Translations under genes and position numbers: made by a program | Shown: in pieces, positions 1,545 to 54,149 of the stretch | Layout of the letters: every line of letters starts with the position of its first letter | Position numbering within the stretch: the stretch's first letter is position 1 | Source: Carpediemonas membranifera BICM | Lineage: Eukaryota > Protista > Fornicata | Length of the DNA stretch: 64,000 nucleotides | Direction: 5' to 3' | Assembly: GCA_019828565.1 (NCBI GenBank) | Contig: JAHDYR010000020.1 | Span: 124,001-188,000 of the forward strand | Notes under the pieces: model-generated | What the model was told of the DNA's origin: nothing | The model's database searches: none | Seen by the model: the letters and a program-made list of their open reading frames with translations, nothing else

Positions 1545-2377
1545 TGTTGCGCAGTATAAACACATTTTTCGAACCTCCAAGACAGGGCCTGAAAGGAACG
1601 ATCAAAGTGCCAAACTGTACAATATCATCCGTCCGTAGACGAATGTTGGCGGTTAGCCAATTGATGATACTGGAATGAAGTTTGAAGACGTGGGATGTGC
1701 GACTGAACGGAGAGCCACTGAGCTCATCTTCCGTGGCAAGAGAACGCCACAGGATGTTCTCTGCAGCACTCTTGTCCCGATGATCAACATTCGGAGCATC
1801 AGGAATTGTTGCGCGCCACTGAGCACCACGGCACTGTCGATTTTCGCAGAGCATCACACGATGTGGGTGAACGTGCTGGTCATCACGCGGACGAACTCGC
1901 TTGTAGGTGGCGTGGCAGTGAGGGCAGACGACGGTGGTGCGATCCTCGTTAACCATGTTAAGATCGACGACAATGTTATACCCCTTGAGAAGGGAACTAT
2001 CTCTCTCGCGAACTTTCGATATGGCGCGCAAGGAATGAACATACCAGCAGGCGTGGTGAATCCCGAGCTCCCGTAGAAGACTTTCAGGCGAATGGGGGTG
2101 GCGATGGGATGGTGGCGACCGAACTCCCGAGCCAACTGTTGGCCGCAGCGGGCGAAGTGCTTCTGGCGAACTATACAAGTGTAGAGGTGAATTTAATGTG
2201 GAATAGAAGACAATGAGACGACGTGTGAGCGATTGTGATGTTTGCAGCTGTGCTGACGTCCACGAAGAAGACGCTTTGTGGAAGCCCTGGAGAAGACGAT
2301 CTCCCTACCGACTTAAGACGTGAGTAGGAGGGAGACAGGGCAGTGTTGCGCAGTATAAACACATTGTTCGACGTGCA
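1545..2377 (-). mobile_element. Non-autonomous Fanzor element family A, copy 1 (C-terminal Fanzor fragment, terminal direct repeats)
   Basis: Near-identical to 24905-25743 and 53311-54149. Encodes VNEDRTTVVCPHC...CENRQC...HRDKSAAENI (RuvC-II, Zn finger, RuvC-III). Direct repeats at 1545-1572 and 2344-2371; flanking duplication ATTCGATCC at 1536-1544 and 2377-2385. Confidence 0.88.
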
Positions 2378-3120
2378 TTCGATCCAACCGCGCAAAGCTG
2401 CACCGATTGAGCCAAAGCTGAGATGATAAGATTCTGCCATCTATCCCGTCCCGAACAAGGCCTACCTGCGCTATTTGGCTGAACACCGAGGATGGTGCCC
2501 GAGCACTGCGGTGCCGGTGTGGGTTGACACGGTGAGCGTACAAGCGGGCCCCACTCGTGCGGCCCTTCTGCGACACACCGGACAATGAAAATTTACGTGA
2601 ATAATAGTATCTAATGTAACTAAAGCTTGCTCACAGTCCACGGCACGGCTCACCTCCACCTGCGGCCCACAGTCAGCCTCACTTCCCCGGGAGACAGGCC
2701 CCTGGAGATAGAGGTCCCGGACGAGGGGATGAATGTGCTCTTGGACTCATACTGAAGGGGCGACGTCACCTCGGGGCCGGTGTCCGACAGGGAGGCAGAC
2801 AGTGGGGGCGCTGACTCGGGCTTAGGGGGCTGGACCGGGTTGGCCGTCTCCGGGGCCGGGCGAGCGAAGAATGTTTCGCCTTTCTGATCATTATGAAGTT
2901 CATGAACTCTTCTGCAAAGATTGCGGGGTCAATATCATTCTCAACCCGACGGTGTTCGATATGAACGAACCAAAATTCGCACCAAAAGGTGCAGACCAGT
3001 GGAGGCTTCCACGCGTGGATTTAGTAGTAGTGATGGCCTACCTTGGGGGTTTGGCAGGATAGTTGGTAGTGGCGACAGCTGTGAAGCCTGATCAGATCAT
3101 AAATAGAAAGAAAATTTAAA

Positions 3121-3888
3121 CTAGCATATGTCGTCTCTTGATGCGAACAGGTTCTCTACGAACTGCATCGCAGCCTGGTAGTTAGCCTTGGGGTCGAAGC
3201 TGGTCTGTTGAGCTTTGATGAAGCTGGCACAGGCGTTCCACGACCACCCGAGGGCCCTCTCATCGGCAGGCCAGGCCAGGTGCTTGTGGTCGCATAGGTC
3301 ACCCTCGATGACGTCAAGGTGCTTCTTGATTGAATCATTTGAGTAATCGTGGAAGTCCTTCTGGCCATCGTGGTTGAACTTGTCTGACTCGTCCACAAAC
3401 TTGGACAGCTTGCCCTCCTTCATGCCAGCATAGTTGGCGGCGTCGTACACCAGCGATGCGGCGACAGCAGGGGTGGGGAAGAAGTGGGTGTACCAGACCA
3501 ATGCCTGGAGCTGCAGCACGGCGTCCGTCGCCTTGGACACGTCATGGTAGTGGTGGTCCGCAATCGAGTGCTTGTGGTGAGCCACGGCGTCCTCGATGAG
3601 GTGGCAGCAATAGCCCAGAGCAAATGGCTCGGCCGGGAACCCGTGGTAGTCGGGGTGCTCGTGAGCGTAGGCCAGAAGCGCCAGGGCAAATTCGTCGCTG
3701 TGGTACGTCATATCGATCTTTTTGAAGGCATCGGGGACGGCGGCAGCGGCTATAAAGGCCGCACGCTCCTCAACGGTGCCAAAGACGTCGTCAAAGTCAG
3801 TTGTGATGTTATAACCGAGCATTTGGTGAGTTTCGTGAGACCAACAAAGCGTAATGGCGATAAAAAGACTGAAAAAGGCAAAGCGCAT
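3121..3888 (-). CDS. Secreted zinc-dependent phospholipase C / S1-P1-like protein
   Basis: Signal peptide, then mature N-terminal W-x-x-x-T-H; GYCCHLIEDAVAHH motif. Confidence 0.65.
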   Translation of the reverse strand: MRFAFFSLFIAITLCWSHETHQMLGYNITTDFDDVFGTVEERAAFIAAAAVPDAFKKIDMTYHSDEFALALLAYAHEHPDYHGFPAEPFALGYCCHLIEDAVAHHKHSIADHHYHDVSKATDAVLQLQALVWYTHFFPTPAVAASLVYDAANYAGMKEGKLSKFVDESDKFNHDGQKDFHDYSNDSIKKHLDVIEGDLCDHKHLAWPADERALGWSWNACASFIKAQQTSFDPKANYQAAMQFVENLFASRDDIC

Positions 3889-4117
3889 CGTTTGTGGTGT
3901 TGAGAGATGGTTGAACGATTGGATTTGGACAGAATCTAGTTGAATCTGACGATAATATTGCCGGCATGACCCAGCGCGAACACACACACACACCATTGGC
4001 GCTATTGCCGCGGCCTTGTCACCCGGCTACGCCCAATCCGCACAGGATCGATACCACATCCGCGATACGATTTCCACCCAGAAACTTGTGGACCGCCCAT
4101 TAAATCTCACAACAGAT

Positions 4118-4585
4118 TTATTCGGCAAGGCCAACCTTGTCCTTGACGGCCTCCGGGGTGGGGCGGGCATCGAGAGCCTTGCCAAGAGTGTCCTTGACCT
4201 GAGCCCGCTTCAGAGAGTCGGCGGCACCCTGCTGGTTGGCAGGGCCGGTCTTGAGGATGCCCTTATCGATCAGATCCTTCTTGTCCTGACGGATCTTGAG
4301 CTTGGTGTCGAGGGAGGCCTTGGCCTGCTCGACCTTGAGCTGCTCGGATTGGGCCTGCAGCTGAGGAGCGCCTGGCTTCAGAATTCCCTTCTCAAGGAGG
4401 TCCTTCTTGTCCTGACGAAGCTTAAGCTTGGTATCCAGCTGAGCCTTGGCGGTTTCGCGCTTCAACTCTTCGGATTTGGCTTGAAGAGTCGCGGGGCCGG
4501 TCTTCAAAATGCCACGCTCAACAAGATCCTTCCGCTCTTGGCGAACCTTAAGCTTGCTATCCAGTTGGGTCTTTGCTTCCTCCAT
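4118..4585 (-). CDS. RPEL-repeat (actin-binding) protein
   Basis: Three to four ~40-aa repeats LDxKLKxRQxKKDLxExGILK. Confidence 0.8.
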   Translation of the reverse strand: MEEAKTQLDSKLKVRQERKDLVERGILKTGPATLQAKSEELKRETAKAQLDTKLKLRQDKKDLLEKGILKPGAPQLQAQSEQLKVEQAKASLDTKLKIRQDKKDLIDKGILKTGPANQQGAADSLKRAQVKDTLGKALDARPTPEAVKDKVGLAE

Positions 4586-5193
4586 GTTGTCAAAAATGTC
4601 TCGGTTTGTGGTGTTGTGTTGTCAAGGAAAAAAAGATGCGGATTTTTTTTAGCATTGCGAGACGTCGAGCATGATTGAGGCCACCGCGGCCGCGACGCTG
4701 ACATATGTGGATCTGAAGGAAATCTTGACAGATTCAAAAATTCTCCGGTCGACCAGATACGATCAGTTCACCTTCGAGCCTTGGGATGATCCGGAAAGGC
4801 TTTAAAAAACTATGATCCTATTAACACCCCTATCGCGACTTCTGCTCCGGCGACCTAATGTCGCCGGTCATAGGCATCCCCAAGAACGATGGGATGGCCA
4901 TCTTGACAATGAGGACGAACCAGTAGAGGTGGAGCACGAGCAGGGTGCAGAGGAAGAGGATGCAGCCGGGCCTCATTCATGTAGTTCTCGTCGCCCGGGT
5001 GCAGGGCGGGGTGACCCTTGAACTCTGCGGCAACGGAGGGTGAGTGCAGGATATAGTTGAAGACGCAGAAGCATGAGTCAGCCACTTGATATTCATACCG
5101 TCCGGTGAATGCCCTGACTGCCACATCTTTCAGTTGCCCTGGTACAAAGCTGGGAGCGACCATTCTCAAACCATCCATCACATTCTTTACCTC

Positions 5194-5728: not shown

Positions 5729-5904
5729 ATTCCTGGATGTTTGCTCGATGGTTGTAGTTGTGACAGAAAAAAAGAAGTACTATGACATGTTGAAACCATA
5801 CATGGCAAAAAGATAGATCCTGACATGCCGTAGCGTGTCAAACGAGATTATGACATTGGCTAGAAATCGCAGTTTAGCCCATATTCAACGTCTACCGGTG
5901 TCAG

Positions 5905-5986
5905 GTGGGGGCTGCTTCGGCGGCTGTCTAACCAGACAACGAATCACCTCATGCCGCGCGGGGCGCGGTTTTGCTGCTGTTTACGA
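5905..5986 (+). repeat. ~82-bp structured repeat (second copy at 52294-52375), candidate stand-alone omegaRNA-like ncRNA
   Basis: GCTGC-TTCG-GCGGC hairpin, TGTCT-AACC-AGACA hairpin and downstream GGTT; the two copies are ~85-90% similar by eye. Confidence 0.6.
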
Positions 5987-6192
5987 ATTTATCCGTGAGT
6001 TGTTTGTGAGCGTAAATAAATAGAGTTTAGCCCGTGTGGCAATCAGCCACATCAGATGCCGGACGGCCTGTGGACGCAGACTCAGAGCCGGTGTAGTAGA
6101 GCCCTGCTGCACTAAGACGTACAGTGGGAGAAATAACTAGGATCTATCGAGAGCAGGGGCCATGTCCGGACAGTACAGGCGGAGACTGAGAC

Positions 6193-7137: not shown

Positions 7138-7140
7138 TTT

Positions 7141-7485
7141 TGTGTTTGTTTATTTTCATCAATCAGTGCTTCTCCAGTCCTCTCGCCAAGGTGTCAAGGT
7201 GCTCCATGGTACAGACAGCAACGCCTCAATTCCGATCCTACCACCACTTGGCTCAATCTCTCCCACAGAGACAAGACTGCTGCACAGAACATCTTGGATT
7301 GCGGCCTCATGACGGATGCACAGCATCAAGCCAGTGCTTTCAGAAATCCAAGACCTCCAGCCCGTCTTCCCAACTATAACCCCAATACACCAATTATGGC
7401 TAACCAGCCGCTTGTCTTCGCCTCCGGGCAAGCTAATTGAAGTGGAGAGACGCAGTGCTTGCACTGTGCACTCTATGATACTTCA
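7141..7485 (+). mobile_element. Fanzor element family C relic (C-terminal fragment plus 3' structured end)
   Basis: RCQGAPW...HRDKTAAQNIL (RuvC-III). TG...CA ends with imperfect flanking duplication ATTTT/ATTTA. The last 30 bp are identical to 34222-34251. Confidence 0.7.
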
Positions 7486-7616: not shown

Positions 7617-9710
7617 CTACTCCCAATCTCCAACGCCGAACATCATGGCCACCTCGCCTGGATCGAGCCTCTCGCTGTCGAGCAGCATCCTCAGCCGGCC
7701 CTCGTATCCGGCCCCGCCCCTCAGGGCAACGAGCGCCGAGTATTGCCGGATGAGGTTGTCCTTCAGCGGGGCCAGGTCGACCGCGGGGGCCGTCTCCGTG
7801 AGCTCCGGGGGGATGGGCTCGTCGTCCTCGTCGGCAAACGCGGTAAGCTGGGCAGCGATGTTCGCTATCGTGGTTTGGCGTTGGGCCGCGGCCTCTCTCT
7901 CGAGCGGGGCGAGGCTCAGCTTGAGGGCGGACACCACGCCGACAGGCCCGACCTGCACGTCCTGGTCGACCTCGGTGTCCAACTCAGACAGCTTCAGAGT
8001 CAAATACGATGCAATAAACTGCACTGCAGCTATATCTGACGACATTACGGAAAAGCTGCCGTTCGACACAACAAGGGTGAGGATCGCACCAGTTGACCTG
8101 TGGCGGTAGTTAAACGTGGCCGAGTCAGCATGCGCCTTGGGCGGCTCCGGGAAGACAGACCCGAGCAGGGGGCAGATCAGAAGAATGTTGACCTCGGCGC
8201 CGGTGAGCGTCACGCGAGTACCACCAAGGGAAGGCTCGTCTGAGGCGTAGCGTTCGTAGCTGTGCAGAGGGCAGACGTCGACTCGGCTGACTGCGCACAG
8301 ACTGCTCGTTGGGAAGAACGACGACAGCGTGAAGAGTCCGCCGACGCCCTCGGTCAGCCCAATCGTAATCGTCGCAGAGGTTGACGCTTGCTGGAACAGG
8401 AGCCGTGCTACCTCAGCCGAGTCTGCGGTGGCAGGGCTTGACATAATCACAGATTCAGGAGTGGATCTAATGATGTGCCATCCTGATTCTGGACATGAAA
8501 CTAATACGGAAGCCATCGGACTGACAGATGAAATCTGGATCTCTATCGCGTTCGCGACATACGAGGTCGAAACCTGCACAGTCGGTAGAGTCACTAGGGA
8601 GCTTGACCCGGCGTCCTTCTTCGCAACCTTGCCTCGGAGCTTCGCCTCCTCGGCTGTAAGCTTCTGTATAGTCGCCCGAAGTCCTTTGATGCGGTCTGCC
8701 CGGTGCGTTGACGATGTCACGGCATGCTCGGGGCCGACCTCGTTGTCATCGAACGTGTAGGCTGCCGACTCGGTGAAATAAAGCACGGAAACTTGGCCAG
8801 CATCTGTCACTACGAGGACGGTCGGGCTAGTGTCCATGGGGAGAAGATCTGACACAAATCTGACCCGTATGACTCCGTTGAGTCGCCGGTGGAACATGAC
8901 TCGGCCCTTGAGGTCGACAGCAATCAAACTGTCCACTGTGGCAATCAGAGTGTATTCCGGAGTGCCGGAAGTTGCCGGGCAGACTGCGATGTGTCTTCCC
9001 TGTGCAGCTTCGGGCAGCGAGATGACGCTGAGGGACCCGTCGTCAGGGTCGACGTGGACGATCTCCCCGGTGCAAAGGATGGCCAGTCTGCCCGTGTCTT
9101 CGCAGATGCCAACAGCGAGACCGTTGCTTGGCAGGGACTCGACTCGGATCAAGTCGCCTCTGATTGAGATAATCTTAAACTCAGTTGCTGTGAGGTATAA
9201 AATCTGACCTTGTGCGAGCATTGGGATGACATCGATGATCGTGTGGGTGGACACAAGCTTGTTGAGCACCTGCCCGTCGTGATCGAGGAGTACTACCATC
9301 AGCTCCGTGATGGTGACGATAGTTTCATCCACAACGACCAGACCGGTGATCGGTTCGATAAACGAGGAGTGAATCTCATCGGATATGCGGCCGCTGGATA
9401 GAACGTGGTATACTGAGTGGCCGATGGCGACGTAGGCGGAAGAGGTGTCGATCTTGCCGTCAGAGTATGAGAAGCATGCGGCTGTGATCGGTTCAGTGAG
9501 AATCACATCTGGCGCAGTCCATTCCCACTCTATAGTTGCCCCCTTGGTCGTATCACGCCAACACTTCACCTGGTTACGCCCAGATGTGGTCAGAACGAAG
9601 CGCCCCTTCTTATTTGAGCCCCCGGATGGAAGGCTGGGGCCAACATCGATACTACATTGGTGCATTAGATCTAGCGATATAATAGTGTCCACATTGGTCT
9701 GAAAAGACAT
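7617..9710 (-). CDS. BBS7: BBSome subunit BBS7-like
   Basis: Propeller, coiled coil and GAE/platform organisation; VCPLHSYER...VTLTG...FPEPP...TFNYR resembles BBS7. Confidence 0.7.
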   Translation of the reverse strand: MSFQTNVDTIISLDLMHQCSIDVGPSLPSGGSNKKGRFVLTTSGRNQVKCWRDTTKGATIEWEWTAPDVILTEPITAACFSYSDGKIDTSSAYVAIGHSVYHVLSSGRISDEIHSSFIEPITGLVVVDETIVTITELMVVLLDHDGQVLNKLVSTHTIIDVIPMLAQGQILYLTATEFKIISIRGDLIRVESLPSNGLAVGICEDTGRLAILCTGEIVHVDPDDGSLSVISLPEAAQGRHIAVCPATSGTPEYTLIATVDSLIAVDLKGRVMFHRRLNGVIRVRFVSDLLPMDTSPTVLVVTDAGQVSVLYFTESAAYTFDDNEVGPEHAVTSSTHRADRIKGLRATIQKLTAEEAKLRGKVAKKDAGSSSLVTLPTVQVSTSYVANAIEIQISSVSPMASVLVSCPESGWHIIRSTPESVIMSSPATADSAEVARLLFQQASTSATITIGLTEGVGGLFTLSSFFPTSSLCAVSRVDVCPLHSYERYASDEPSLGGTRVTLTGAEVNILLICPLLGSVFPEPPKAHADSATFNYRHRSTGAILTLVVSNGSFSVMSSDIAAVQFIASYLTLKLSELDTEVDQDVQVGPVGVVSALKLSLAPLEREAAAQRQTTIANIAAQLTAFADEDDEPIPPELTETAPAVDLAPLKDNLIRQYSALVALRGGAGYEGRLRMLLDSERLDPGEVAMMFGVGDWE

Positions 9711-9766
9711 CCCTTGCCTCCGCTTTCGTCAAAAAGGCAATGTGCAGTTTAACAAAAAAAATACTC

Positions 9767-19412: not shown

Positions 19413-19592
19413 CCATGTGAATGTAACGCGTGTTGGTGTTGGGCAGTCTCGAGGGACGTAAGCACGCAAAACCCGCGGGGCGACCCCGGCAACGAACAGG
19501 CCGCCTCCACTGACAAAGAATGCCGCGCCCTCCAGCCACACGCAATCGTCCACCGGCAGGGGCACCCTGACGAACTTGGCCGTGGCGGTCGA
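19413..19592 (-). pseudogene. 180-bp duplicated internal fragment of the RCC1-like gene at 26015-27631
   Basis: Matches 26336-26515 with about 2 mismatches. Confidence 0.85.
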
Positions 19593-23465: not shown

Positions 23466-23513
23466 TGTGCTTTTGATTGAACGGTTCGAAAAATGTGTTT
23501 ATACTGCGCAGCA
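23466..23513 (+). mobile_element. Solo family A terminal repeat (48 bp, TG...CA) with 5-bp TSD CCGTC
   Basis: CCGTC at 23461-23465 and 23514-23518; core TCGAAAAATGTGTTTATACTGCGCAGCA. Confidence 0.8.
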
Positions 23514-24832: not shown

Positions 24833-24904
24833 AGACGCCAAATGTCACTTATGAGTGCCAAACGGGGCCAAAAGTTGTGCCGCGCAGGATTAGCCACCTC
24901 CGAC

Positions 24905-25743
24905 TGTGTTGAAGGGTCGAACAATGTTTATACTGCGCAACACTGCCCTGTCTCCCTCCTACTCACGTCTTAAGTCGGTAGGGAGATCGTCTTCTCCAGG
25001 GCTTCCACAAAGCGTCTTCTTCGTGGACGTCAGCACAGCTGCAAACATCACAACAATCGCTCACATGTCGTCTCATTGTCTTCTATTCCACATTAAATTC
25101 ACCTCTACACTTGTATAGTTCGCCAGAAGCACTTCGCCCGCTGCGGCCAACAGTTGGCTCGGGAGTTCGGTCGCCACCATCCCATCGCCACCCCCATTCG
25201 CCTGAAAGTCTTCTACGGGAGCTCGGGATTCACCACGCCTGCTGGTATGTTCATTCCTTGCGCGCCATATCGAAAGTTCGCGAGAGAGATAGTTCCCTTC
25301 TCAAGGGGTATAACATTGTCGTCGATCTTAACATGGTTAACGAGGATCGCACCACCGTCGTCTGCCCTCACTGCCACGCCCCTGCAAGCGAGTTCGTCCG
25401 CGTGATGGCCAGCACGTTCACCCACATCGTGTGATGCTCTGCGAAAATCCACAGTGCCGTGGTGCTCAGTGGCGCGCAACAATTCCTGATGCTCCGAATG
25501 TTGATCATCGGGACAAGAGTGCTGCAGAGAACATCCTGTGGCGTTCTCTTGCCACGGAAGATGAGCTCAGTGGCTCTCCGTTCAGTCGCACATCCCACGT
25601 CTTCAAACTTCATTCCAGTATCATCAATTGGCTAACCGCCAACATTCGTCTACGGACGGATGATATTGTACAGTTTGGCACTTTGATCGTTCCTTTCAGG
25701 CCCTGTCTTGGAGGTTCGAACAATGTGTTTATACTGCGCAACA
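24905..25743 (+). mobile_element. Non-autonomous Fanzor element family A, copy 2
   Basis: TG...CA ends, 5-bp TSD CCGAC (24900-24904 / 25744-25748); the empty site is visible at 29101-29120; frameshifted Fanzor C-terminus. Confidence 0.9.
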
Positions 25744-26014
25744 CCGACACAATTGGGGTGGTGCTCAGCCGCCGAAGCAGCAAAGATCACCTGACTATGA
25801 ATTTGATGGCGAATTAAGCCCGCAAGTGAGAAATGGGGCCGAAGCCCGGTGGTATGGGCTGTTGGACACTAGACCAGAGGCTGGCTGACGAAGGAGATGA
25901 TGGGGGTCAATTCAGATCGAGTAGGCTCGTGCACCTCCTCGGCTTCACAGTCATCAACACTGGTCCCAACCTGGCATTGTGCTCCAGATAAATGTTTGAA
26001 ATATGAATGAAATT

Positions 26015-28990: not shown

Positions 28991-29171
28991 TGTGCCGCGC
29001 AGGATTAGAATTGTTGAGTCTAAAAAACAGGCTGAACCTGTTTAGTCCCCTGGAGTTCATCCCGGGGGGGGGGGTTGCGGTGGCCATGGCGGAGCCACAT
29101 CCACCTCCGACACAATTGGGGTGGTGCTCAGCCGCCGAAGCAGCAAAGATCACCTGACTATGATTTTGATG
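28991..29171 (-). repeat. ~180-bp non-coding element ending in the family B terminal repeat; deleted copy at 24876-24904 + 25749-25808
   Basis: Reverse complement ends GACTCAACAATTCTAATCCTGCGCGGCACA; contains GCTGC-TTCG-GCGGC and AAACAGG/CCTGTTT stems. Confidence 0.7.
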
Positions 29172-29255
29172 ACGTCATAGGAACTTCAGATCAGCACCGA
29201 TCAAATCTGATTGCCTTACGCCCCACGAAGCTTTGTTTACAGATGCCATGGCTCG

Positions 29256-34151: not shown

Positions 34152-34221
34152 ATGATCTCGGCATAAACTGCGAAACGTTTACTTGAAGTCTGCGCGGAGA
34201 CGATTGAGAGTCCTACTTTAC

Positions 34222-34251
34222 TGCTTGCACTGTGCACTCTATGATACTTCA
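34222..34251 (+). repeat. Solo copy of family C terminal 30-mer
   Basis: TGCTTGCACTGTGCACTCTATGATACTTCA identical to 7456-7485. Confidence 0.75.
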
Positions 34252-39116: not shown

Positions 39117-39240
39117 TGTGCGTGTATTGAATGGTCGGACAAAGTGTCTTATTCTGCGACAACACGTGCCCTGTCTCCCTCCTACCCAGTCTACTCTTAT
39201 GTCGGCAGGGGTGCTGTCTTCTTCAGAGACACCACAAAAC
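39117..39240 (+). mobile_element. Diverged left end of a family A-like element (48-bp repeat plus pyrimidine tract)
   Basis: TGTGCGTGTATTGAATGGTCGGACAAAGTGTCTTATTCTGCGACAACA followed by TGCCCTGTCTCCCTCCTAC, as at 24944. Confidence 0.7.
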
Positions 39241-39289
39241 GAGCTATCTGGCAAACGGCAAGACTAGAGCCATTCACCATCACCCCCAT

Positions 39290-44284: not shown

Positions 44285-44529
44285 CGGGTGTTCGTCTTTA
44301 GTCGACTTCGAGCTCTAAACTGCACCAATCAGGGAGAATGCAAGGTGCACCCGGGCGCCTACGGAGACTGTTGGTGCCACTCTAACATCCTTTTAGTCAT
44401 CGCCCAACCGAAGTTTGGCCCAATCCCGTGGGTGACAGGTTTATTACACACTGGACCCCAGAGTCTGCGGCGTCCGACCAGCCTCAGTCTGAATAGTTCT
44501 ACTCGTACATCTACCCAACTCGATCCTAA

Positions 44530-45645: not shown

Positions 45646-45695
45646 GATTTAGTCAGGCCGAAATTTCTTCAAAGTGCAGTTTAAGGACAGGTGGG

Positions 45696-47607
45696 TGTGG
45701 TATTTAGAGGTTTATGTGGAGGATTCATGTAAAGGTGACTTAAGCTGCTTTAGACTCAACAATTCTAATCCTGCGCAGCACACTACCTCCACTCACCCAC
45801 TTCAGCCCTCGTCTGTACAATCGGGCTTTCGTGCTTTCAGTCGTCGGTCTGCACGAAAAGATGCGTCGTCCATCGTCTGTGTCGAATGCTGCTGTCTTCT
45901 TTCGCGTCTGTGCTCGTCTGTTACGCGCTCATCTGTCGTCCATTGCCGGCGTCTGAAGCTCATGACGTCGTCGTCTTCGTCGTCTTCGTCTGTTGTGAGA
46001 GACACTAGTGGTGGAAAGCGGTTGTAGCTAGTAGTAAAGACGCTTTGTGCTGTATGATGCTGGTTTCTTGTGTTTTGAGGGATGCTGCTAGCTGATGAAC
46101 CCTGAAAAGAAATGATCGATGCAGGCAGCTCAATAGACTCCAATACCTTCCAAGATATACACGGTGAAGGCTTCCGTTAACAAGGCCATTGGCGAGATTA
46201 ACGGCGGAGGCGATAACAACGCGCCGCGGCGAGGAAATCTTGAACCCGGCATGCGTTCTTTCACGCAGGCTAAGTACACATTCACTTGCCTGCTTGCGTG
46301 CGTCTCTGCATCTGCGCACGCGTTGACCCACCGAGGACGGTCAACCTGTTCGACCAGGAGGTCCTCAAGCAGATCGTCAGCATTGCTCAGCAAAAGGTGT
46401 CGAAGGCAAAGGCAGCGGATCGGTGCAGGTGGATTGGCGACCTGGAGATGTGGAGGGACCCTGACATAACCCCACTCGTCCGGGACTTCAGGGAAGTCTA
46501 CGTTGGAATTGCAGCGCCATTTCAGAGCTGGTTGGGCGAGTACTCCACAGCCACCCGGGTCTGGCTCTCGCGCGCGTCACCCGGGTACCTGACCCGTCTT
46601 CGTGCTGGATTAGAACGGGTGCGTCCGCTCCTCCATGATCGGCCGGGTGTTCGACAGGATTTTCTCGACACCCAAGGCGAGCTCGACACTGAGGTTGCCG
46701 CCATAGCCGCCGATCATGGCATGCATCATCGTCAAATGCATGCATCGCCCGAGGGGCAACGGGTGGGTCGCACTGGTACCGTGGCCGAGGCCCTTGTCGG
46801 CGTGCTGTCGTGCGTCACGCGCATGAGTGCTGCAGTGACCAAGCTGGTCACACTCACTCGTGCCGTGAACCTCGAGCTCAGTCAGGCCCTGCCAGAGCCG
46901 AAGCTCGTTCCGTTCGTGCCGATGGCGCCGGTCAGGCCTGGGTTCATGACCATCGAGCGCGGAGTAACAGCGCTCACCCCAGCGATGAAGAGGCGCCTCC
47001 GTGTCTATCGGGATTGGTCAGCGAAGAGTAACTTGACCGACGAGCAGGTTGATAGATACGAGCGTGATCACGGCGACATCACCAAGCTCCGCAGAGTGCT
47101 CTCTGTGAAGACTGACGGGGTCTCTGCTGCTGTGACGGTTTGGGTGGGTCGCGAGAAATACCGTGGCGGTCGGGTGGCTGACCGGCCCACGTACAAAGGT
47201 AGCAGCAACAAGCGGGCTCGGCTCGGTCAGGATGACGCCGAGGCTACTCCTGCCCCGGACATTCAAGCTCTCATGGGCTTCGACCCTGGTGCTCGGTCGC
47301 TGGGCGGCTACACGATCCGCCGCCCAGACGGGCAGAGTGTATCTGGCGTACTCGCTAAGTGTGGCTACACTGCCACCCCCTCTTTCCGCGTGAATATGAG
47401 CGCAGCATCGTTCAAAACGACAAGTCTAGAGGCTCTCAAACAGTCGATTAGGTTTGTCCATGAGAACATCGTTCAGATCATCAACGAGGGGACGAGAAAA
47501 GTGTTTCCGCCGTGCGACTTTTGCCAATCACCGTCTGCGCCTGAAGCACTTCGCCCGGGCTGGACGTCATTGTTTTGGACTCAACAATTCTAATCCTGCG
47601 CAGCACA
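45696..47607 (+). mobile_element. Fanzor element family B (internally deleted), TG...CA, 30-bp direct repeats, 5-bp TSD GTGGG
   Basis: Perfect repeat GACTCAACAATTCTAATCCTGCGCAGCACA at 45753-45782 and 47578-47607. TSD at 45691-45695 and, after removing the Ty3, 47608-47609 + 52296-52298. Confidence 0.75.
46119..47570 (+). pseudogene. Fanzor1-like nuclease, N-terminal ~480 aa (premature stop, frameshifts, C-terminus deleted)
   Basis: YTVKASVNK start, RuvC-I MGFDPGARSL, bridge-helix RLKHFARAG matching RQKHFARCG of family A. Confidence 0.75.
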
Positions 47608-47609
47608 GT

Positions 47610-50600
47610 TGTCGCCACAATGGACTGATGTGAACAGGGTGCAGTTTATCTCACACTACATTCCCCTCCAGAGGAACTAGTCCAGTCTGTTGGCACGTCT
47701 GTGACCGGACTGAGGCTTGGCCTCGAAAGCCTTGATCGCACGGTCAAGGTCAGGGTGAGATGAACGATAGTGGGTGAGAGCGGAGAGCGTCTTGATCTCA
47801 GTGTAACGCCGCTCGCTGTCTTCATCTGATTCATGCCCAAGCCAGTGAACAGTCAGAACTGGCTCGAGAGTGTCGGCTTCAAGACGCCAACCAACGATAG
47901 AGTCTACGACACCCCAGACAGTGTCGGACATGAACGCAACCTTGGCCTCTCCAACAGAGGGCTTACGAGGGAGCTTTGCGAGTCTGTTCGCATGACGCTT
48001 GATGATGACCTTGGTCACAGGATTCATCAGGCTGTAGGTATCAGGACCGTCAGCGGCTCCTGTCACCAGATAAGGTCCGCGCAAGTGGAACTCAAGACGA
48101 GGTACAGGCTGGTCACGCTTAACCAGGACCCAATCGCCGATATTGAGCTGCTTCGAACCGAATCGAGGGAAATGCTCATCCTTCCACCTCCTCCGGTGAA
48201 GCTGAGCTGCCTGTAGCTTGGCAATAACGCTCTTAGCGCGCTCCTGCGTCTCGGCAGTGATATGCGATCTGTCAGGAGTGATAGGTTCGCCGTTCTTAAC
48301 AGCGTGATGGACAAGTGCAGCCGAAAGAGCAACCTCTCTAGGCGTAGCGCCTCCCAGTGACACACTGGGGGTAGCATTGATGTTAATCTCCGCTTGGGAC
48401 ATAGCATTGCGCCATTGGTGGCGCGGACAATCAGATAACGTTCCAATAGCGACCCTAAGGTGCTTGTTGGCCTCCCGGTTAAATCTCTCAACGAGGCCAT
48501 TTGCCTCGTGCCTTTCAGGCGTAGTTACGCGATGGTAAATGCCGAAGGTAGCGCAGAAGGTCTTAAAGTCATGGTTGCAAAACTGAGTACCACTGTCAGT
48601 TACAATCTGGTCGGGGCACGCCCAACGCGCGATGATGATCGACCGGATTGCCATAATAGTCTCGCGAGCCTCAGTGCTCTTAAGAGGGATAAGGTGGGTG
48701 AGGTGGGAACCTCCGTCAACGCATGTCATGATATACCGGTAGCCCGAGTCCTCAGGAGTTATAGGTCCGATAGTATCCACGTGGAGCGTGGCCAACGGCC
48801 TGTCAGCTGGCAGCTGGCGCTCGATGTACATGACATTTGGTTGAGCACGGTGTGAGCGCTGACATGTCACACACCGTTCTACATAAGACTCCACGTCCTT
48901 TCGAGCCCCAGTCCAACTGAGTCCGGCAACCTCCAAGAGGTGTAGGGTGGTGTCTACTCCGGCATGATGCCTGCTGTGCACAGACTGGAAGCGAGATTGC
49001 TTGATGTCGTCAGTCAGAACAGCGTTCTCCCCAATATACATGATGGGAAGCCTTGACAGGCTGTCAGCAGCCGTGTTGTCGCGCCCAGGGATATGCACGA
49101 CTTCATAGATGGGGAAGCGGGCCATCTCTAAGGCCCAACGAGTGACCTTGGGCGTCGAGGATGCAACCATCGACACAAGGCATGAGTTGTCAGTGTGGAG
49201 TGATATGGGCGTACCAATAAGCATAGGACGGAAGCGCTCCAGAGCAGCGAACACAGCCCACTGCTCTTTCTCGACAGTCTTCCAGACACACTGCTGTTTG
49301 TCAAAGCGGCGTGAAAAGAATGCCAAAGGGTGGCCATCCTGCACCAGGACGGCACCAACGCCCACGTTGCTCGCGTCAGTATAGAGATCGAGTGGCTTGT
49401 TGGGATTGAAATGATAGAGTGTGACCGCCTCACTTGCAGCCTCTCTCAAACACTCAAGGGAGTGGCGTCTCTGCTCAACTGAAATCGTCTCCCCGGCCTT
49501 AAACCTCTCGAGAGGGTCTGCCTTTCCGATGTAGTCCGGTATAAATCTTCTGATAAAGCCAAAAACCCCGAGCACATGTTGTGCTTCGGACTTGTTCAGA
49601 GGGACACGGATATTAGTCAATGAGTCGAGTCTGGATGGGTGGATCGAGACCCCCGTTCCAGACACAACCGAACCCAGATAATCAATTTGGGTTAAGCCAA
49701 TGTGAGACTTGGGCCCCGACAGCCGGATTCGATGATCACAGCAGACGTCAAACAGCTCCTCAACCACAGAAAGGAGGTCTGCAGCCGAGCCTGCGTAGCA
49801 GAGTACGTCATCAACAAAGATCAGGCACTTAAGCTTGTACTTGCGACGCAGACCATCAAGTCTGGACTGAAAGATCATAGGCCCATTCATGAGGCCAAAG
49901 GGCAGACGACGGAAGACATATCTCTCGCCACGATGTTCAAAGCCTGTCGCCATAGAGGCCTGCTCGGTCAGATTGAGCTGATGGAAACCCGAGCGGAGGT
50001 CGAAGCAGGCAAACACCTCGGAGCCTCGACATGCCTCGTAAAGCTCTTCCACAGTTGGCATAGGATGTTCCTCGACCTCAGTAGCCGCGTTAACATGGCG
50101 GTAGTCGAGAATGGGTCTGAACGGTGGGTTCGCGGAGGGCTTACCAACCATAAACACGGGGGAGAGCCATTTCAGGTCAGCAGTTGTGCTCTCGATGGTC
50201 CCGTTATCAAGCATAGACTCAATAAAGGTATCCATGGCCTCGAGGTGGGCCTTGTTCCGGATAGGTCTCATGATCTGGGAGGGGACGATGCCATCCTTCC
50301 AGATAATGTCAAACTCTGCCAAATCAGCTCCCGATGGGTGCAACGGACCAAAGAGCTCACTATGCTTCTCGCACAGTGCATGGAACTTAGGTGCAAGATC
50401 ACCGAGGTTCGAATCATGGATAGTAGGAAGAGTGTAGCCGCCGACATATAGGTTAGCTAACTCAACAAAGTCGTTGACCGGATCTGTCGAAGGAGTCTTA
50501 TCCTCCTCCGGCTCTGGCTTATTAACGCCAAAGGACAGTCCTACTGCACGCATGGCAGTCTTACCCAGGATGAGTGCCGTGGGTAGGTCAGGGATAATAA

Positions 50601-52290
50601 CAGCATCAAGCTGTCGGCCACGCACCGGGAAACAACCGGGCATGGAGACAATAGGGCTCAGCGTCGTAGTACCAACATAGCAGCCACACTGGCCATTCCA
50701 GCTGTTGACGTGGCCCTCGGCCGGTGTAACTGTTAGACCCAGGCGTTCAGCCGCCTCAGGCCTCATCATAACGGCAAACTGCTTGGCACAAGAGTCGGCC
50801 TCTGCAACAACCACAGGACCGCCGTGACGTGTGCTAACCTCGACGAGGAAGTCATCGTAGGTTTCAGGCAGCTCAGTCATCATGGGTTCAACATAGATAC
50901 CCGAGTGCTCAGCCTTCGGGATAAAACCATTGTAAGAGTTCTTGTTGCGTGTCGAGCGCCCTTCAGTCTTGACTCGGTCAGCGATGGACTCCAGAGTCAC
51001 ATTGTGCGCCTTCATAGCAGCTAAAGCAGTCTTACAAGGCTGCTTGTCGAGATCCTGAGCTCTCCGGACATGGTTCATGAGCTTGGGGATGGTAAGGACC
51101 TTAGTAATGTCGGCTTGCTGCTTTGCATTCGCAGCCTGTAGGACGTGGCAGTCACTGCTACCGTGGTCGTCGACGAGGTGGAAGCAACAGAATTTCCCAC
51201 CGGAGTTCTTCGGGCCTGCGGTCATCGCCCTCGGAGCGATGTCTCCCTTAACAGTACGGGAGAAGGGCTTGGACTGAGTGGAGATGGGGGTCACAGCCTC
51301 CATGACTCCATCAACTCTACGTAGAAAGTCGCGAAGCTCAGTGGACTTCTTGAGAGCCTCGCTAATCAAGGTGTCAACAGTCACAGTATGATCGAGTATG
51401 CGCCGAGAGTACCCCGTGCCAAAGAGGTAGTTGAGGGTGACGTCATTCGGGGCACGCACTCCTTCGATGAGGAGCCTCTTAATCTCACTTCTTAGACCAT
51501 GGTCATCGGAGCACTGAAGCGAATCCAGGGTCTGGCGGAAGGCCAATAGGAATGTGATGGTGGACTCGAGCGATTCGAGCCTTGTTCCGTGATTGACCTG
51601 CGACACAGCCGCCAAGATAGCTAGAGCATCAGAATCCGTCATCTTAAGTTCCTGACGCAAGTAGTCAAGGTAATTGTCGGCCTGCTTACCGAGGGCTTCG
51701 GTCTTGGATAGGGCCGTCTCCTTAGGGAGAGCGAGCGAGTGCTCTATGGTCTCCTCCATCGTCGTCAAATAGTTAGCTCTTGCCTTCGAGAGCTTGTCTT
51801 CACGCTTAGCCTTAGCATCAGGCGTCTCCTCATCGGGAACAATCTGAAGAGTAGTAATATACTCCTTAAGCATGGTTACTGTTCGAGAGAGCTTCGTGAA
51901 ACGGTCAGATGAACCGTTATACATCTTCGATGAGAGGTATGGCTCTATCTCTTGGGCCAAATACGACACGAGTTCAGTAGCAGAGGTGAACTTTCGTGTT
52001 GATGAAGAGTAGGAATTGGGCAGAACCTTCAGCTCCGCCGTGGGGTCATGAATGGTGGCTAAGAAAGCCAATGCGGGTGCGTTCGATAGAACCTTCCCAA
52101 GTGTCAGCACGTTCTTGTTATCACTGAGATTGTGATTTTTCAGTAGGAGGATCCAGTGATTCCATGCAGCATAATCCCGTTTGTTAGGGGGATCCTTCAA
52201 AGCTGATATGTCCATGTTCTTAATAGCAGTAGAAGCTTCTGTCGCCACAATGGACTGATGTGAACAGGGTGCAGTTTATCTCACACTACA
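47610..52290 (-). mobile_element. Intact Ty3/gypsy chromovirus-like LTR retrotransposon with 51-bp identical LTRs and 5-bp TSD ACAGT
   Basis: LTRs at 47610-47660 and 52240-52290 (TG...CA); PPT GGAGGGGAA adjacent to the 3' LTR; TSD at 47605-47609 and 52291-52295. Confidence 0.95.
47677..52215 (-). CDS. Gag-Pol polyprotein (Gag Zn knuckle, protease, RT, RNase H, integrase, chromodomain)
   Basis: CFH...H....C; ADSCA; DLRSGFHQ, LPFGL, FVDD; YTDAS; HH..CC, VDTIG, TDSG, VERFN; IVG.R...VHWLG. Confidence 0.95.
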   Translation of the reverse strand: MDISALKDPPNKRDYAAWNHWILLLKNHNLSDNKNVLTLGKVLSNAPALAFLATIHDPTAELKVLPNSYSSSTRKFTSATELVSYLAQEIEPYLSSKMYNGSSDRFTKLSRTVTMLKEYITTLQIVPDEETPDAKAKREDKLSKARANYLTTMEETIEHSLALPKETALSKTEALGKQADNYLDYLRQELKMTDSDALAILAAVSQVNHGTRLESLESTITFLLAFRQTLDSLQCSDDHGLRSEIKRLLIEGVRAPNDVTLNYLFGTGYSRRILDHTVTVDTLISEALKKSTELRDFLRRVDGVMEAVTPISTQSKPFSRTVKGDIAPRAMTAGPKNSGGKFCCFHLVDDHGSSDCHVLQAANAKQQADITKVLTIPKLMNHVRRAQDLDKQPCKTALAAMKAHNVTLESIADRVKTEGRSTRNKNSYNGFIPKAEHSGIYVEPMMTELPETYDDFLVEVSTRHGGPVVVAEADSCAKQFAVMMRPEAAERLGLTVTPAEGHVNSWNGQCGCYVGTTTLSPIVSMPGCFPVRGRQLDAVIIPDLPTALILGKTAMRAVGLSFGVNKPEPEEDKTPSTDPVNDFVELANLYVGGYTLPTIHDSNLGDLAPKFHALCEKHSELFGPLHPSGADLAEFDIIWKDGIVPSQIMRPIRNKAHLEAMDTFIESMLDNGTIESTTADLKWLSPVFMVGKPSANPPFRPILDYRHVNAATEVEEHPMPTVEELYEACRGSEVFACFDLRSGFHQLNLTEQASMATGFEHRGERYVFRRLPFGLMNGPMIFQSRLDGLRRKYKLKCLIFVDDVLCYAGSAADLLSVVEELFDVCCDHRIRLSGPKSHIGLTQIDYLGSVVSGTGVSIHPSRLDSLTNIRVPLNKSEAQHVLGVFGFIRRFIPDYIGKADPLERFKAGETISVEQRRHSLECLREAASEAVTLYHFNPNKPLDLYTDASNVGVGAVLVQDGHPLAFFSRRFDKQQCVWKTVEKEQWAVFAALERFRPMLIGTPISLHTDNSCLVSMVASSTPKVTRWALEMARFPIYEVVHIPGRDNTAADSLSRLPIMYIGENAVLTDDIKQSRFQSVHSRHHAGVDTTLHLLEVAGLSWTGARKDVESYVERCVTCQRSHRAQPNVMYIERQLPADRPLATLHVDTIGPITPEDSGYRYIMTCVDGGSHLTHLIPLKSTEARETIMAIRSIIIARWACPDQIVTDSGTQFCNHDFKTFCATFGIYHRVTTPERHEANGLVERFNREANKHLRVAIGTLSDCPRHQWRNAMSQAEININATPSVSLGGATPREVALSAALVHHAVKNGEPITPDRSHITAETQERAKSVIAKLQAAQLHRRRWKDEHFPRFGSKQLNIGDWVLVKRDQPVPRLEFHLRGPYLVTGAADGPDTYSLMNPVTKVIIKRHANRLAKLPRKPSVGEAKVAFMSDTVWGVVDSIVGWRLEADTLEPVLTVHWLGHESDEDSERRYTEIKTLSALTHYRSSHPDLDRAIKAFEAKPQSGHRRANRLD

Positions 52291-52293
52291 ACA

Positions 52294-52375
52294 GTGGGGA
52301 CTGCTTCGGCGGCCATCTAACCAGGCAACAAGTCACCTCATGCCGCGCGGGGTGCGGTTTTGCTACTGTTTACGA
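52294..52375 (+). repeat. Second copy of the 5905-5986 structured repeat; target of the family B insertion
   Basis: Sequence similarity; the reconstructed empty site CAGGTGGGGACTGCTTCGG matches 5902-5920. Confidence 0.7.
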
Positions 52376-52511
52376 GGGGTTGTATGTAAAAAGTTGAAGG
52401 AGCCACATGCTGAACGAGCTGACTGTGCCTAGCGGCATAGCAACTCTACCGCACAGTCATAACATATAATTTACCGTTGCGGAAATGCCATGACCTCGCC
52501 GCTCACCCCGT

Positions 52512-53291
52512 TCATCCCTGGAGGTGGCTGATGGCAGCATTCGGGGCATCAGCGAGACACCTCTCGATCGACCCCGGCTCACTGCACCCGACACAAATCA
52601 GGCCCCGCCTCTGCATCTCCACCACACACTTGTAATGGTATAGCTTCCCGCAGTCACAGGTGGCGAAGATGGATACCGGCTTGTCGCAGAAAGTGCACAC
52701 TGGGTCATGGGGAGTTGCCAGCTCTGCCAGGGCTCTCGGGCCGAGGATCAGGCGGAAGCTGTTGGGATCCTGCCCCAGGTAGTGGTGCTGCTTGAGAGTC
52801 TTGATGACGGTGTCCATCACGGCCCTGGAGATCTTCGCAGATGTCCGCAGGTTGTTCAGCTGGGTCTCGGCGAGGGGGCCGTCCTTCTTGAGCCGAGCAA
52901 TGAGAGAGGAGATGAAGACCCCGCGTTCTTTCTGGCCGATGCCGAGGACGTTGCTGAATATAATGGGATCAACAGTGTTTGTGGAGGTCAGGACGACGTA
53001 TGCGGCTTCGTCGAATGGATCATCGCTGCCTTGTAGCCAGTAGTAGTCTGGGAGTTCCTGCAGGACCAGTCGGTAGACGTTGGGCATTAGCTTGTTGACT
53101 TTGTCGATCATTTCGCGCACTAACTCTGTCTGACGCTCAACACCATCGACACCGGCTGAGTAATGGAGAAAAAGAAAGAACAAACGCGAGCATGTCTTTG
53201 AGAACATGTCCAGACGCATCACTGGATGCGCAAAGAACAACTTGAGCATTTGTGCCGGCGTCGGAACGGGTTCAGTTGGATCACGCGCCAT
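52512..53291 (-). CDS. Nse1-like SMC5/6 subunit (winged helices plus C-terminal RING)
   Basis: LILGPRALAEL followed by C4HC3-type RING CTFC...CDC...H..C...CVGC. Confidence 0.75.
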   Translation of the reverse strand: MARDPTEPVPTPAQMLKLFFAHPVMRLDMFSKTCSRLFFLFLHYSAGVDGVERQTELVREMIDKVNKLMPNVYRLVLQELPDYYWLQGSDDPFDEAAYVVLTSTNTVDPIIFSNVLGIGQKERGVFISSLIARLKKDGPLAETQLNNLRTSAKISRAVMDTVIKTLKQHHYLGQDPNSFRLILGPRALAELATPHDPVCTFCDKPVSIFATCDCGKLYHYKCVVEMQRRGLICVGCSEPGSIERCLADAPNAAISHLQG

Positions 53292-53310
53292 CCTCACTTA
53301 TCGCCCGCTT

Positions 53311-54149
53311 TGTTGCGCAGTATAAACACATTGTTCGAACCTCCAAGACAGGGCCTGAAAGGAACGATCAAAGTGCCAAACTGTACAATATCATCCGTCC
53401 GTAGACGAATGTTGGCGGTTAGCCAATTGATGATACTGGAATGAAGTTTGAAGACGTGGGATGTGCGACTGAACGGAGAGCCACTGAGCTCATCTTCCGT
53501 GGCAAGAGAACGCCACAGGATGTTCTCTGCAGCACTCTTGTCCCGATGATCAACATTCAGAGCATCAGGAACTGTTGCGCGCCACTGAGCACCACGGCAC
53601 TGTCGATTTTCGCAGAGCATCACACGATGTGGGTGAACGTGCTGGTCATCACGCGGACGAACTCGCTTGCAGGGGCGTGGCAGTGAGGGCAGACGACGGT
53701 GGTGCGATCCTCGTTAACCATGTTAAGATCGACGACAATGTTATACCCCTTGAGAAGGGGAACTATCTCTCTCGCGAACTTTCGATATGGCGCGCAAGGA
53801 ATGAACATACCAGCAGGCGTGGTGAATCCCGAGCTCCCGTAGAAGACTTTCAGGCGAATGGGGGTGGCGATGGGATGGTGGCGACCGAACTCCCGAGCCA
53901 ACTGTTGGCCGCAGTGGGCGAAGTGCTTCTGGCGAACTATACAAGTGTAGAGGTGAATTTAATGTGGAATAGAAGACAATGAGACGACGTGTGAGCGATT
54001 GTGATGTTGCAGCTGTGCTGACGTCCACGAAGAAGACGCTTTGTGGAAGCCCTGGAGAAGACGATCTCCCTACCGACTTTAGACGTGAGTAGGAGGGAGA
54101 CAGGGCAGTGTTGCGCAGTATAAACACATTGTTCGACCCTTCAATAGCA
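53311..54149 (-). mobile_element. Non-autonomous Fanzor element family A, copy 3
   Basis: Near-identical to copies 1 and 2. Flanking duplication CCCGCTT at 53304-53310 and 54150-54156 (or 5 bp if the end reads GGTGC). Keeps VFYGSSGF...CAPYRKF...VNEDRTTVVCPHC in one frame. Confidence 0.9.

Follow-up and report, generated by a model that had tools for sequence, protein, structure and literature searches.

Nucleases of the TnpB and Fanzor families are thought to persist by aiding the survival of excising DNA transposons. The vehicles described for Fanzor1 are DNA transposons with inverted repeats, belonging to Mariner/Tc1, hAT, Helitron, Sola, CMC and other groups (Bao and Jurka, PMC3627910; Saito et al, 2023, PMC10432273). 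In SpuFz loci, insertions of Ty3 were noted and treated as incidental (Saito et al, PMC10432273), and within 10 kb of Fanzor genes Gypsy was reported to occur more often than any other transposon (Jiang et al, 10.1101/2023.06.13.544871; review PMC13565253). According to a 2026 review, retrotransposons are not known to encode a Fanzor, nor is any advantage seen in one doing so (PMC13565253). We analysed a 64-kb stretch of gene-dense nuclear DNA (~55% G+C) from the free-living metamonad Carpediemonas membranifera (contig JAHDYR010000020.1, positions 124,001 to 188,000; the whole stretch is called the window hereafter), which contains three families of Fanzor1-like elements (A, in three copies, B and C), solo repeats and one Ty3/gypsy element. 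The Fanzor elements are bounded by direct repeats of the long terminal repeat (LTR) type, and we consider it likely that they are non-autonomous derivatives of Ty3/gypsy (chromovirus-type) LTR retrotransposons, in which an antisense Fanzor1-like gene replaces gag-pol and which are mobilised in trans by Ty3. No paper linking Fanzor with Carpediemonas was found in the literature. The proximity of the two kinds of element is already known; what is described here is the first element-level evidence that we have found that a Fanzor can spread on a retrotransposon chassis.

Fanzor genes in LTR-type units and their target sites

Copies were surveyed in the window and in 11 loci (L001-L011) around annotated Fanzor fragments, ~282 kb in total, and element anatomy and duplications are described in the LTR sense, which is the strand antisense to Fanzor. 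All three families have direct repeats at their termini, with TG...CA ends, in ~20 copies, and the same unit, consisting of left repeat, Fanzor, purine tract and right repeat, recurs at ~20 unlinked sites. The left repeat measures 40 nt in A, 41 nt in B and 48 nt in C, and the right repeat 41-43 nt, 41 to ~200 nt and 65 nt, respectively. The two have in common only their first 28-37 nt, in which an A/T-rich block comes after GCGCAG (TATAAAC in A, GATTAGA in B), together with the last bases, which are also kept (..ACA, ..CACA, ..CTTCA). A G-rich purine tract abuts the right repeat in A, B and C, ending in (T/C)A(G/A) immediately before the TG, and these tracts resemble those found at the same position in the two Ty3 elements of the sampled DNA (Table 1). 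The three A copies of the window, 0.83 kb in length and 98-99% identical, carry one common internal deletion, and A and B derive, by complementary deletions, from a ~2.3-2.5-kb element: B has kept the N-terminal two thirds of the gene, and A the RuvC-II / zinc-finger / RuvC-III end, which is all that the internally deleted relic A1 encodes. The family C relic at 7156-7485 has lost its right repeat and most of the gene. The original prediction, drawn from the letters of the window, had placed five Fanzor relics there, and all five were recovered, with coordinates corrected as in Table 1. Its direct repeats with TG...CA ends hold, whereas the length of 28-30 bp that it assigned to them does not, the repeats being longer and asymmetric. 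The purine tract that it reported inside one repeat on the antisense strand is real and occurs in all three families.

All close protein matches of the relics are C. membranifera hypothetical proteins (GCA_019828565.1), present as fragments by the dozen, and searches of Pfam and PDB with single relics returned sub-threshold matches only. A family profile of 10 proteins, run against 1.8 billion representatives, reached eight proteins beyond the close family (P0062-P0069, E 5.5e-7 to 1e-3). Seven of the eight were scanned in Pfam, where PF07282 (Cas12f1-like TNB) was above the cut-off in five and below it in two, and one of the eight matched SpuFz1. When the alignment of the relics was compared with that of the distant relatives by hhalign, the match (99.5% probability, E 1.8e-22) spanned RuvC-II (NEFRTS), the CPxC...CxxxC zinc finger and RuvC-III (HRDKxAxxNI). 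The joint profile of the nuclease half recovered SpuFz1 (E 4.5e-14), PpFz1 (3.7e-12) and GtFz1 (9e-7), with Cas12f and a viral TnpB-like protein ranking after the Fanzors. When an AlphaFold2 model of the nuclease half (pLDDT 74) was searched with Foldseek, the best matches were SpuFz, CasX, mimivirus Fanzor2 and Cas12f, with modest TM scores of 0.3-0.44; an earlier model from a 10-sequence alignment (pLDDT 38) was unusable. The relics contain a RuvC-like domain with D-E-D motifs split by a zinc finger and homologous to TnpB/Cas12. The Fanzor identity suggested by the original prediction is carried both by the family and joint profiles and by the structure search, in which SpuFz came top, and the relic proteins can soundly be assigned, on sequence comparison, to a Fanzor1-like (TnpB-family) nuclease.

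The Fanzor open reading frames (ORFs) are broken in all 14 copies checked, by frameshifts, stops or large deletions; the longest reaches 538 aa, and none spans the whole gene. Near-identical copies with the same lesions are found in family A (three copies) and in family C (L003a and L003b, 99.5% identical). Since copies with common lesions have transposed, the Fanzor is not needed in cis today, and, with every sampled Fanzor gene broken, the present-day spread proceeds without need of it; the cargo is dead in the sampled copies. The last 150 nt of the elements in the Fanzor sense fold better than shuffled sequences (z -3.5, -4.0 and -2.3, and -1.1 for a coding control). The structured non-coding 3' region predicted in this way is compatible with an omega-RNA, and would equally fit a leader structure of the retroelement on the other strand.

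Target-site duplications were tallied for 19 Fanzor elements and solos with both ends readable, the two Ty3 elements being counted separately. A perfect 5-bp duplication flanks 11 of the 19, and both Ty3s as well, so that 5 bp is the clear mode of duplication length; the sequences and the departures from the mode are collected in Table 1. Among the latter are three sites with a 7-bp duplication ('5+2'), in which the U5 end is short by its last two nucleotides; one of them is A3, whose right repeat is without the terminal CA of the family consensus. The duplication of A2 is confirmed by a paralogous empty site, the left flank of which differs by an 84-nt stretch of B-type repeat (pair 25739-25811 / 29102-29174). 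The possibility that one of the repeats belongs to the target was ruled out, because the empty site is without both of them. All three 5-bp duplications of the original prediction stand up: CCGAC at A2 through this empty site, GTGGG at B after removal of the Ty3 of the window together with its own ACAGT, and CCGTC as the flanks of the family-A solo. Beyond that prediction, A3 and A1 were found to have duplications of 7 bp and 8-9 bp, and extra relics or solos were located at 28991, 34184 and 39125.

Two Ty3 elements are present in the sampled DNA. The one in the window, Ty3w, encodes protease, reverse transcriptase, RNase H and integrase in its ORF and is inserted 2 nt past the end of element B. 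The second, Ty3-A in L005, is a chromovirus with zf-CCHC, RVT_1, RNase H, integrase zinc finger and chromodomain, and its reverse transcriptase is only 29% identical to that of Ty3w. Over its last 31 nt, the Ty3-A LTR is identical to the right repeat of the family-A copy in L004, and the first bases are similar (TGATGCA in the LTR, TGTTGCG in the family-A repeat); with both ends matched in this manner, the A repeat looks like a Ty3-A LTR from which ~55 internal nt are missing. The pol of Ty3-A lies on the strand opposite to the Fanzor sense, and the antisense orientation of the cargo is consequently anchored by homology, beyond the purine tract alone. The original prediction had noted a loose resemblance between the repeat and the LTR of the neighbouring Ty3w, and loose it is; the much closer match is that to Ty3-A. 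A homology search with the gag region of Ty3-A returned no match, the Ty3 genes being apparently unannotated in the assembly. Both autonomous elements have unusually short LTRs (51 bp in Ty3w, 92 bp in Ty3-A), and their start codons lie ~27 and ~13 nt past the 5' LTR, respectively, a gap that leaves almost no space for R, U5 and a primer-binding site (PBS).

The insertions are positioned with respect to a motif in which GYGCAG is followed by an A/T run (GYGCAG-WWWW; reverse complement WWWW-CTGCRC). Motifs resembling GTGCAGTTTA occur 18 times in the window where 2.5 would be expected (~7-fold), often 20-60 nt upstream of start codons; within 80 nt upstream of annotated start codons, the motif is found at 18 and 15 of the 89 genes in its two orientations (background 2.3%). 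The motif, which is also present in the LTRs, is probably a core promoter element of Carpediemonas. At all seven canonical A-type sites, Ty3-A included, the start of CTGCR lies exactly 17 nt from the U5 end, and at all seven canonical B-type sites it lies 16 nt away, which amounts to 14 of 18 sites at a background rate of 1% (binomial P ~3e-25). The offset is shifted by exactly 2 in the three '5+2' copies. It is the U5 end that faces the motif in the A and B insertions and in Ty3-A; element B of the window was inserted 22 nt from the start of the motif at 45674-45683, and the spacing is equal at the other A and B insertions. Family C shows the opposite motif orientation, with an offset of 11 (13 in the '5+2' copy of L003a), and Ty3w shares this orientation, its offset being 9; it lies 8 nt from the motif inside the left repeat of B. 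A single promoter in L005 was struck by both Ty3-A and a B element, 1 nt apart. The common promoter-motif register is the reason why Ty3 elements are found exactly at the termini of B, and it rules out the reading of this coincidence as a trace of Fanzor cutting. Taken together, the duplication length, the terminal sequence and the target register that Ty3-A and the Fanzor elements have in common point to the same integrase machinery.

Two side observations concern the register and the motif. At 12048-12062 of L006, a 15-nt piece that matches the U5 end of Ty3-A and family A exactly (CCCTTCAATAGCACA), with a G-run before it, stands at the canonical 17-nt register before a DEAD-box helicase gene, the motif being CTGCC, not CTGCR; it may represent an insertion that was aborted or an element reduced by extreme deletion. 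The window also contains two copies, 90% identical, of an 82-nt sequence (5905-5986 and 52294-52375), each of them downstream of the promoter motif. The sequence comprises a GCUGCUUCGGCGGC hairpin with a UUCG loop, another hairpin that is GC-rich, and a U-run. Rfam gave no match for this sequence, which is a candidate small RNA gene. Element B and Ty3w are inserted at its first bases, and a 14-mer of the sequence recurs beside A2 (25768) and in the paralogue of A2 (29131).

Replication and competing explanations

We propose that the left repeat would comprise a U3 with a host-type promoter motif, a few nucleotides of R and a diverged U5-like stub. It would be followed by the antisense Fanzor gene, whose structured 3' region represents the putative omega-RNA, and then by the G-rich polypurine tract and a right LTR bearing the U5 end of a resident autonomous element. 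Reverse transcriptase and integrase of Ty3 type would copy and insert such units in trans, giving rise to the TG...CA ends, the 5-bp duplications and the solo repeats, and integration would take place at a fixed nucleotide distance from the core-promoter-like motif, with the U5 end towards it. An antisense cargo mobilised by Ty3 was also the central claim of the original prediction. Its core is retained on account of the homology to the Ty3-A LTR, the purine tracts, the 5-bp mode and the target register, with three corrections. Replication departs from the canonical cycle, the cargo is dead in all sampled copies, and the likely helper for family A would be a Ty3-A-like element and not the neighbouring Ty3w with its 51-bp LTRs.

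Several observations weigh against this explanation. In their U5-side part, the two repeats of an element are not alike, and copies at different sites show the same fixed differences, as in A (ACCTCCAAGACA vs CCCTTCAATAGCACA) and in C (17 vs 34 nt past the shared 31). No PBS-like similarity to the sequence that follows the LTR of either Ty3 was detected, nor a self-priming complement, and a tRNA scan of the window and the 11 loci (282 kb) yielded no tRNA gene to compare with a PBS. A1 has a truncated U5 and a duplication of 8-9 bp (TTCGATCC; 1537-1544 and 2378-2385), and A in L002 and B in L007 are without duplication. An autonomous relative with common LTR ends was found for family A only; the sampled DNA, in which there are only two Ty3 elements, contained neither a helper with B- or C-type LTRs nor a composite element with both pol and Fanzor. 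The sampled DNA represents ~1% of the genome and, having been reached via annotated Fanzor fragments, is biased.

The fixed differences between the repeats imply that replication does not follow the canonical two-jump cycle, which would make both repeats identical, and canonical LTR regeneration was ruled out on this ground in either orientation. A T/G polymorphism of the left repeat (A1 and L002 vs A2 and A3) is not mirrored in the right repeat. In the alignment of A1-A3, ~2% of the internal columns are variable, and the last 12-15 nt at the U5 end all differ between copies. In the leader of family B (eight copies and one solo), the distal end is constant (..AAATACCACA), and no two copies join the leader to the end of the shared repeat (..GAGTCTAAA) at the same point, with ~2 variable nt at the joint. 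A fixed acceptor combined with a variable donor suggests template switching, since random deletion would not give this pattern, and the variable B junctions, together with the variable U5 end, look like a sign of reverse transcription.

It can tentatively be hypothesised, as a possibility to which we give rather less than even weight, that Fanzor genes colonised PBS-less LTR shells which capture the strong-stop DNA of a helper chromovirus, and that the integrase of this helper places the shells with single-nucleotide precision beside the core promoter element. In the variant of the replication cycle that we infer as part of the favoured explanation, the Fanzor RNA would be without a working PBS. 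In the LTR sense, it would begin close to where the left repeat ends and stop where the shared part of the right repeat does (GAGUCUAAA in family B). Minus-strand strong-stop DNA of variable length, made on co-packaged helper RNA, would then jump to the 3' end of the Fanzor RNA, after which plus-strand DNA would be primed at the purine tract and the left repeat restored through the short shared segment. The right-hand U5 would in this manner be re-made from the helper in each cycle and the left stub inherited, which would account for the helper-identical U5 of A, the variable leaders of B and the inherited left stub. If this strong-stop capture did take place, an RNA-guided nuclease can spread by copy-out retrotransposition, the likely benefit would be homing into empty alleles and not the restoration of an excised donor, and the variable repeat and leader junctions would be fossil strand-transfer events.

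The best placed alternative is a mobilisation at the DNA level, by cut-and-paste or copy-and-paste, through an integrase-like DDE enzyme that needs only TG...CA termini, such as a Ginger-like transposase or the Ty3 integrase acting on DNA, with the repeats serving as promoter or omega-RNA modules. The faithful transmission of the left/right asymmetry would be expected if the whole element were copied as DNA, and the absence of a detectable PBS and the short terminal inverted repeats of each family (TGAAGT at both ends of C, TGTG in B) are likewise in keeping with it. We nevertheless regard such a mobilisation as unlikely, because a purine tract of Ty3 type is kept at the same place in three diverged families and because a 31-nt stretch of the right repeat matches the U5 end of a retrotransposon LTR exactly. 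The hypervariable U5 end among near-identical copies and the recurrent variable junctions of the B leader would, furthermore, be unusual for DNA transposition. No excision footprints were seen, and no transposase candidate was found in any of the 11 loci.

Far less probable is the reading in which the units are not mobile as such, the Fanzor genes having come from another type of transposon and landed beside or inside old solo LTRs, so that unrelated pieces make up the apparent element, or in which a serine or tyrosine recombinase used the repeats as att-like sites. Solo repeats are indeed common near promoters, and direct terminal repeats are typical of IS607 and Crypton elements (general knowledge; PMC3627910). 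This reading is however already largely refuted by the paralogous empty site, which is without both repeats, and by the presence of the whole unit at ~20 unlinked sites with its own duplication around each. Recombinase elements make no target duplication, and no serine or tyrosine recombinase gene was found in any of the 11 loci. A LINE-like, target-primed retroposition of Fanzor-sense RNA, with a precise 3' end, a variable 5' end and duplications of variable length, is the least probable of all: some duplications do measure 7-9 bp, the end upstream of Fanzor does vary (A1, A3, B in L001, C in L003a), and transcription in the Fanzor sense could begin close to the element's first base, driven by the flanking promoter motif, but the 5-bp mode is clear and the TG...CA ends are defined, the solos carry the upstream-type leader and not the 3' end expected from 5' truncation, the insertion register equals that of a true LTR element, and neither a non-LTR reverse transcriptase or endonuclease gene nor a poly(A) or simple-repeat tail was seen. 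The variable duplications had at first been read as a LINE-like signature, which was dropped once more copies gave the 5-bp mode and defined ends.

Inventory of the window and annotation of the elements

Table 1. Positions of the elements, repeats, duplications, purine tracts and motifs (window coordinates unless a locus is named).
Feature	Location	Strand	Details
Fanzor element A1	1545-2377	-	Fanzor sense on minus strand; left repeat 1545-1584; purine tract 2322-2343; truncated right repeat 2344-2377
Fanzor element A2	24905-25743	+	right (U5-side) repeat 24905-24942; purine-tract complement (pyrimidine) 24943-24964; left repeat 25704-25743
Duplication of A2	24900-24904 and 25744-25748		CCGAC
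Paralogous empty site for A2	29093-29113	+	CCACCTCCGAC then directly ACAATTGGGG
Fanzor element A3	53311-54149	-	left repeat 53311-53350; purine tract 54087-54108; right repeat 54109-54149
Duplication of A3	53304-53310 and 54150-54156		CCCGCTT, 7 bp
Fanzor element B	45696-47607	+	N-terminal 435-aa ORF 46286-47593; C-terminal part deleted; right (U5-side) repeat 45696-45782; purine-tract complement 45783-45810; left repeat 47567-47607
Duplication of B	45691-45695; other copy 47608-09 + 52296-98		GTGGG; second copy split by Ty3w
Family C relic	7156-7485	+	RuvC-III motif HRDKTAAQNIL; left repeat ends at 7485
Solo family-A repeat	23466-23513	+	48 nt, TG...CA ends; flanked by CCGTC, 5 bp
Family-B-type solo repeat	28991-29100	-	includes part of long leader; far end uncertain
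Solo family-C repeat	34184-34251	+	flanks AGTGA / AGTAA (LTR sense), 4/5 match
Older, diverged family-A right repeat and pyrimidine tract	39125-39241	+	74% identity to family A
Ty3w, Ty3/gypsy element	47610-52290	-	one 1523-aa ORF; 51-bp LTRs 47610-47660 and 52240-52290; 5-bp duplication ACAGT, 47605-47609 and 52291-52295
Ty3-A, chromovirus	L005 4787-9432		92-bp LTRs 4787-4878 and 9341-9432; duplication AACAG
Promoter-like motif GTGCAGTTTA	45674-45683	+	
Other positions of the motif	9742-9751, 44316-44325 and 15 more		also in loci L001-L009
Perfect 5-bp duplications, A-type	A2; L004; L008; solo A		GTCGG; GCGAC; TTCGA; GACGG (LTR sense)
Perfect 5-bp duplications, B-type	window; L005; L009; L010; L011		CCCAC; ACAGC; AGATG; CGTCG; CCGGC (LTR sense)
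Perfect 5-bp duplications, C-type	L003b; L004		ATGCG; GCGAT (LTR sense)
Duplications with 4/5 match	B in L006; window C solo		2 sites
7-bp duplications ('5+2')	A3; C in L003a; B in L001		3 sites
Duplication out of register	C solo in L011		1 site; common GTAA of the flanks displaced 1 nt
Purine tract, Ty3-A	abutting TG		..GGGGGGTAG
Purine tract, Ty3w	abutting 3' LTR		..GGAGGGGAA
Purine tract, Fanzor family A	abutting TG		..ACAGGGCAG
Purine tract, Fanzor family B	abutting TG		..GGAGGTAG
Purine tract, Fanzor family C	abutting TG		..GGGGTAA

In addition to the elements of Table 1, heavily deleted or truncated pieces of B and A elements were observed at L005 12721-12833 and L010 4835-5105, the former consisting of the left repeat and ~70 nt and stopping directly at a TAAACTGCAC motif. 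A1 lies ~35 nt upstream of the ATG of a thymidine-kinase gene, the real start of which is near 1510; the 431-aa ORF at 883-2178 on the minus strand is an artefact, in which the A1 Fanzor relic is read through into this gene. In the annotation of GCA_019828565.1, the Fanzor relics are modelled as dozens of 'hypothetical', 'transposase', 'secreted' and 'cytosine deaminase' proteins, some of which skip stops via invented introns, and the Ty3 elements are unannotated; this was noted for proteins P0001-P0061 and loci L001, L004 and L005. Short segmental duplications were noted in the window between 19413-19592 and 26336-26515 (99%) and between 25739-25811 and 29102-29174 (95%). Rfam and tRNA scans of the window gave no match.

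Comparison with known systems

If the elements are indeed Ty3-mobilised derivatives, they would be the first architecture-level counter-example to the view that no retrotransposon encodes a Fanzor (PMC13565253), and the unexplained excess of Gypsy near Fanzor genes would find an explanation. The service that a Fanzor renders to its carrier would then need rethinking, as homing into empty sites, as the state of a mere passenger, or as a role that had gone before the genes decayed. Strand transfer with almost no R region may find a natural test case in the asymmetric repeats and variable junctions, and the precise insertions would reveal a core promoter element and a probable integrase tethering in a deep-branching metamonad with very unusual DNA-processing machinery. 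With regard to annotation, dozens of 'hypothetical protein' models in GCA_019828565.1 are pieces of Fanzor relics.

In their protein family, the relics are comparable to the described Fanzor1 (SpuFz1, PpFz1, GtFz1), with the same RuvC / zinc-finger layout (GFDPG..., NEFRTS..CPxC, HRDKxAxxNI) and, as predicted by folding, a structured non-coding 3' region up to the element end, as expected of an omega-RNA. They differ in the vehicle, which here consists of direct LTR-type repeats with a purine tract and 5-bp duplications, and in that the sampled copies are all pseudogenes. As to the vehicle, the closest likeness is to large retrotransposon derivatives (LARD) and terminal-repeat retrotransposons in miniature (TRIM), with which the elements have in common the direct TG...CA repeats, the purine tract, the 5-bp duplications, the solos, the absence of gag-pol and a probable mobilisation in trans by an autonomous relative that shares the LTR ends. 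In contrast to these, the elements have very short (40-90 nt), unequal repeats and no recognisable PBS, their internal region consists of an antisense gene whose origin is non-retroviral, and the right U5 is apparently made by the helper and not from the element's own 5' end.

Position-specific LTR elements include Ty3 of S. cerevisiae, which inserts at pol III start sites, Tf1 of S. pombe, which inserts at pol II promoters, and DGLT-A and Skipper of Dictyostelium. Integration at a fixed, nucleotide-precise distance from a promoter element is common to these elements and to those described here, and the fixed distance implies that the integrase may be tethered to the transcription machinery. 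The landmark is nevertheless of another kind, being the GYGCAG-WWWW / WWWW-CTGCRC motif upstream of protein-coding genes, which is approached in a fixed orientation with the U5 end towards the motif, and the register is family-specific, at 17, 16 or 11 nt.

The reported proximity of Fanzor and Gypsy is a matter of neighbourhood statistics (10.1101/2023.06.13.544871), whereas here the Fanzor lies inside an LTR-bounded, duplication-flanked unit. Finally, the TnpB elements of the IS200/IS605 and IS607 groups resemble those of Carpediemonas in that the TnpB homologue adjoins one end of the element, from which a guide could read into the flank. The elements described here are, however, without TnpA, have true target duplications, and would be copied out and not excised, so that the transposon-restoring role proposed for TnpB would not apply to them.

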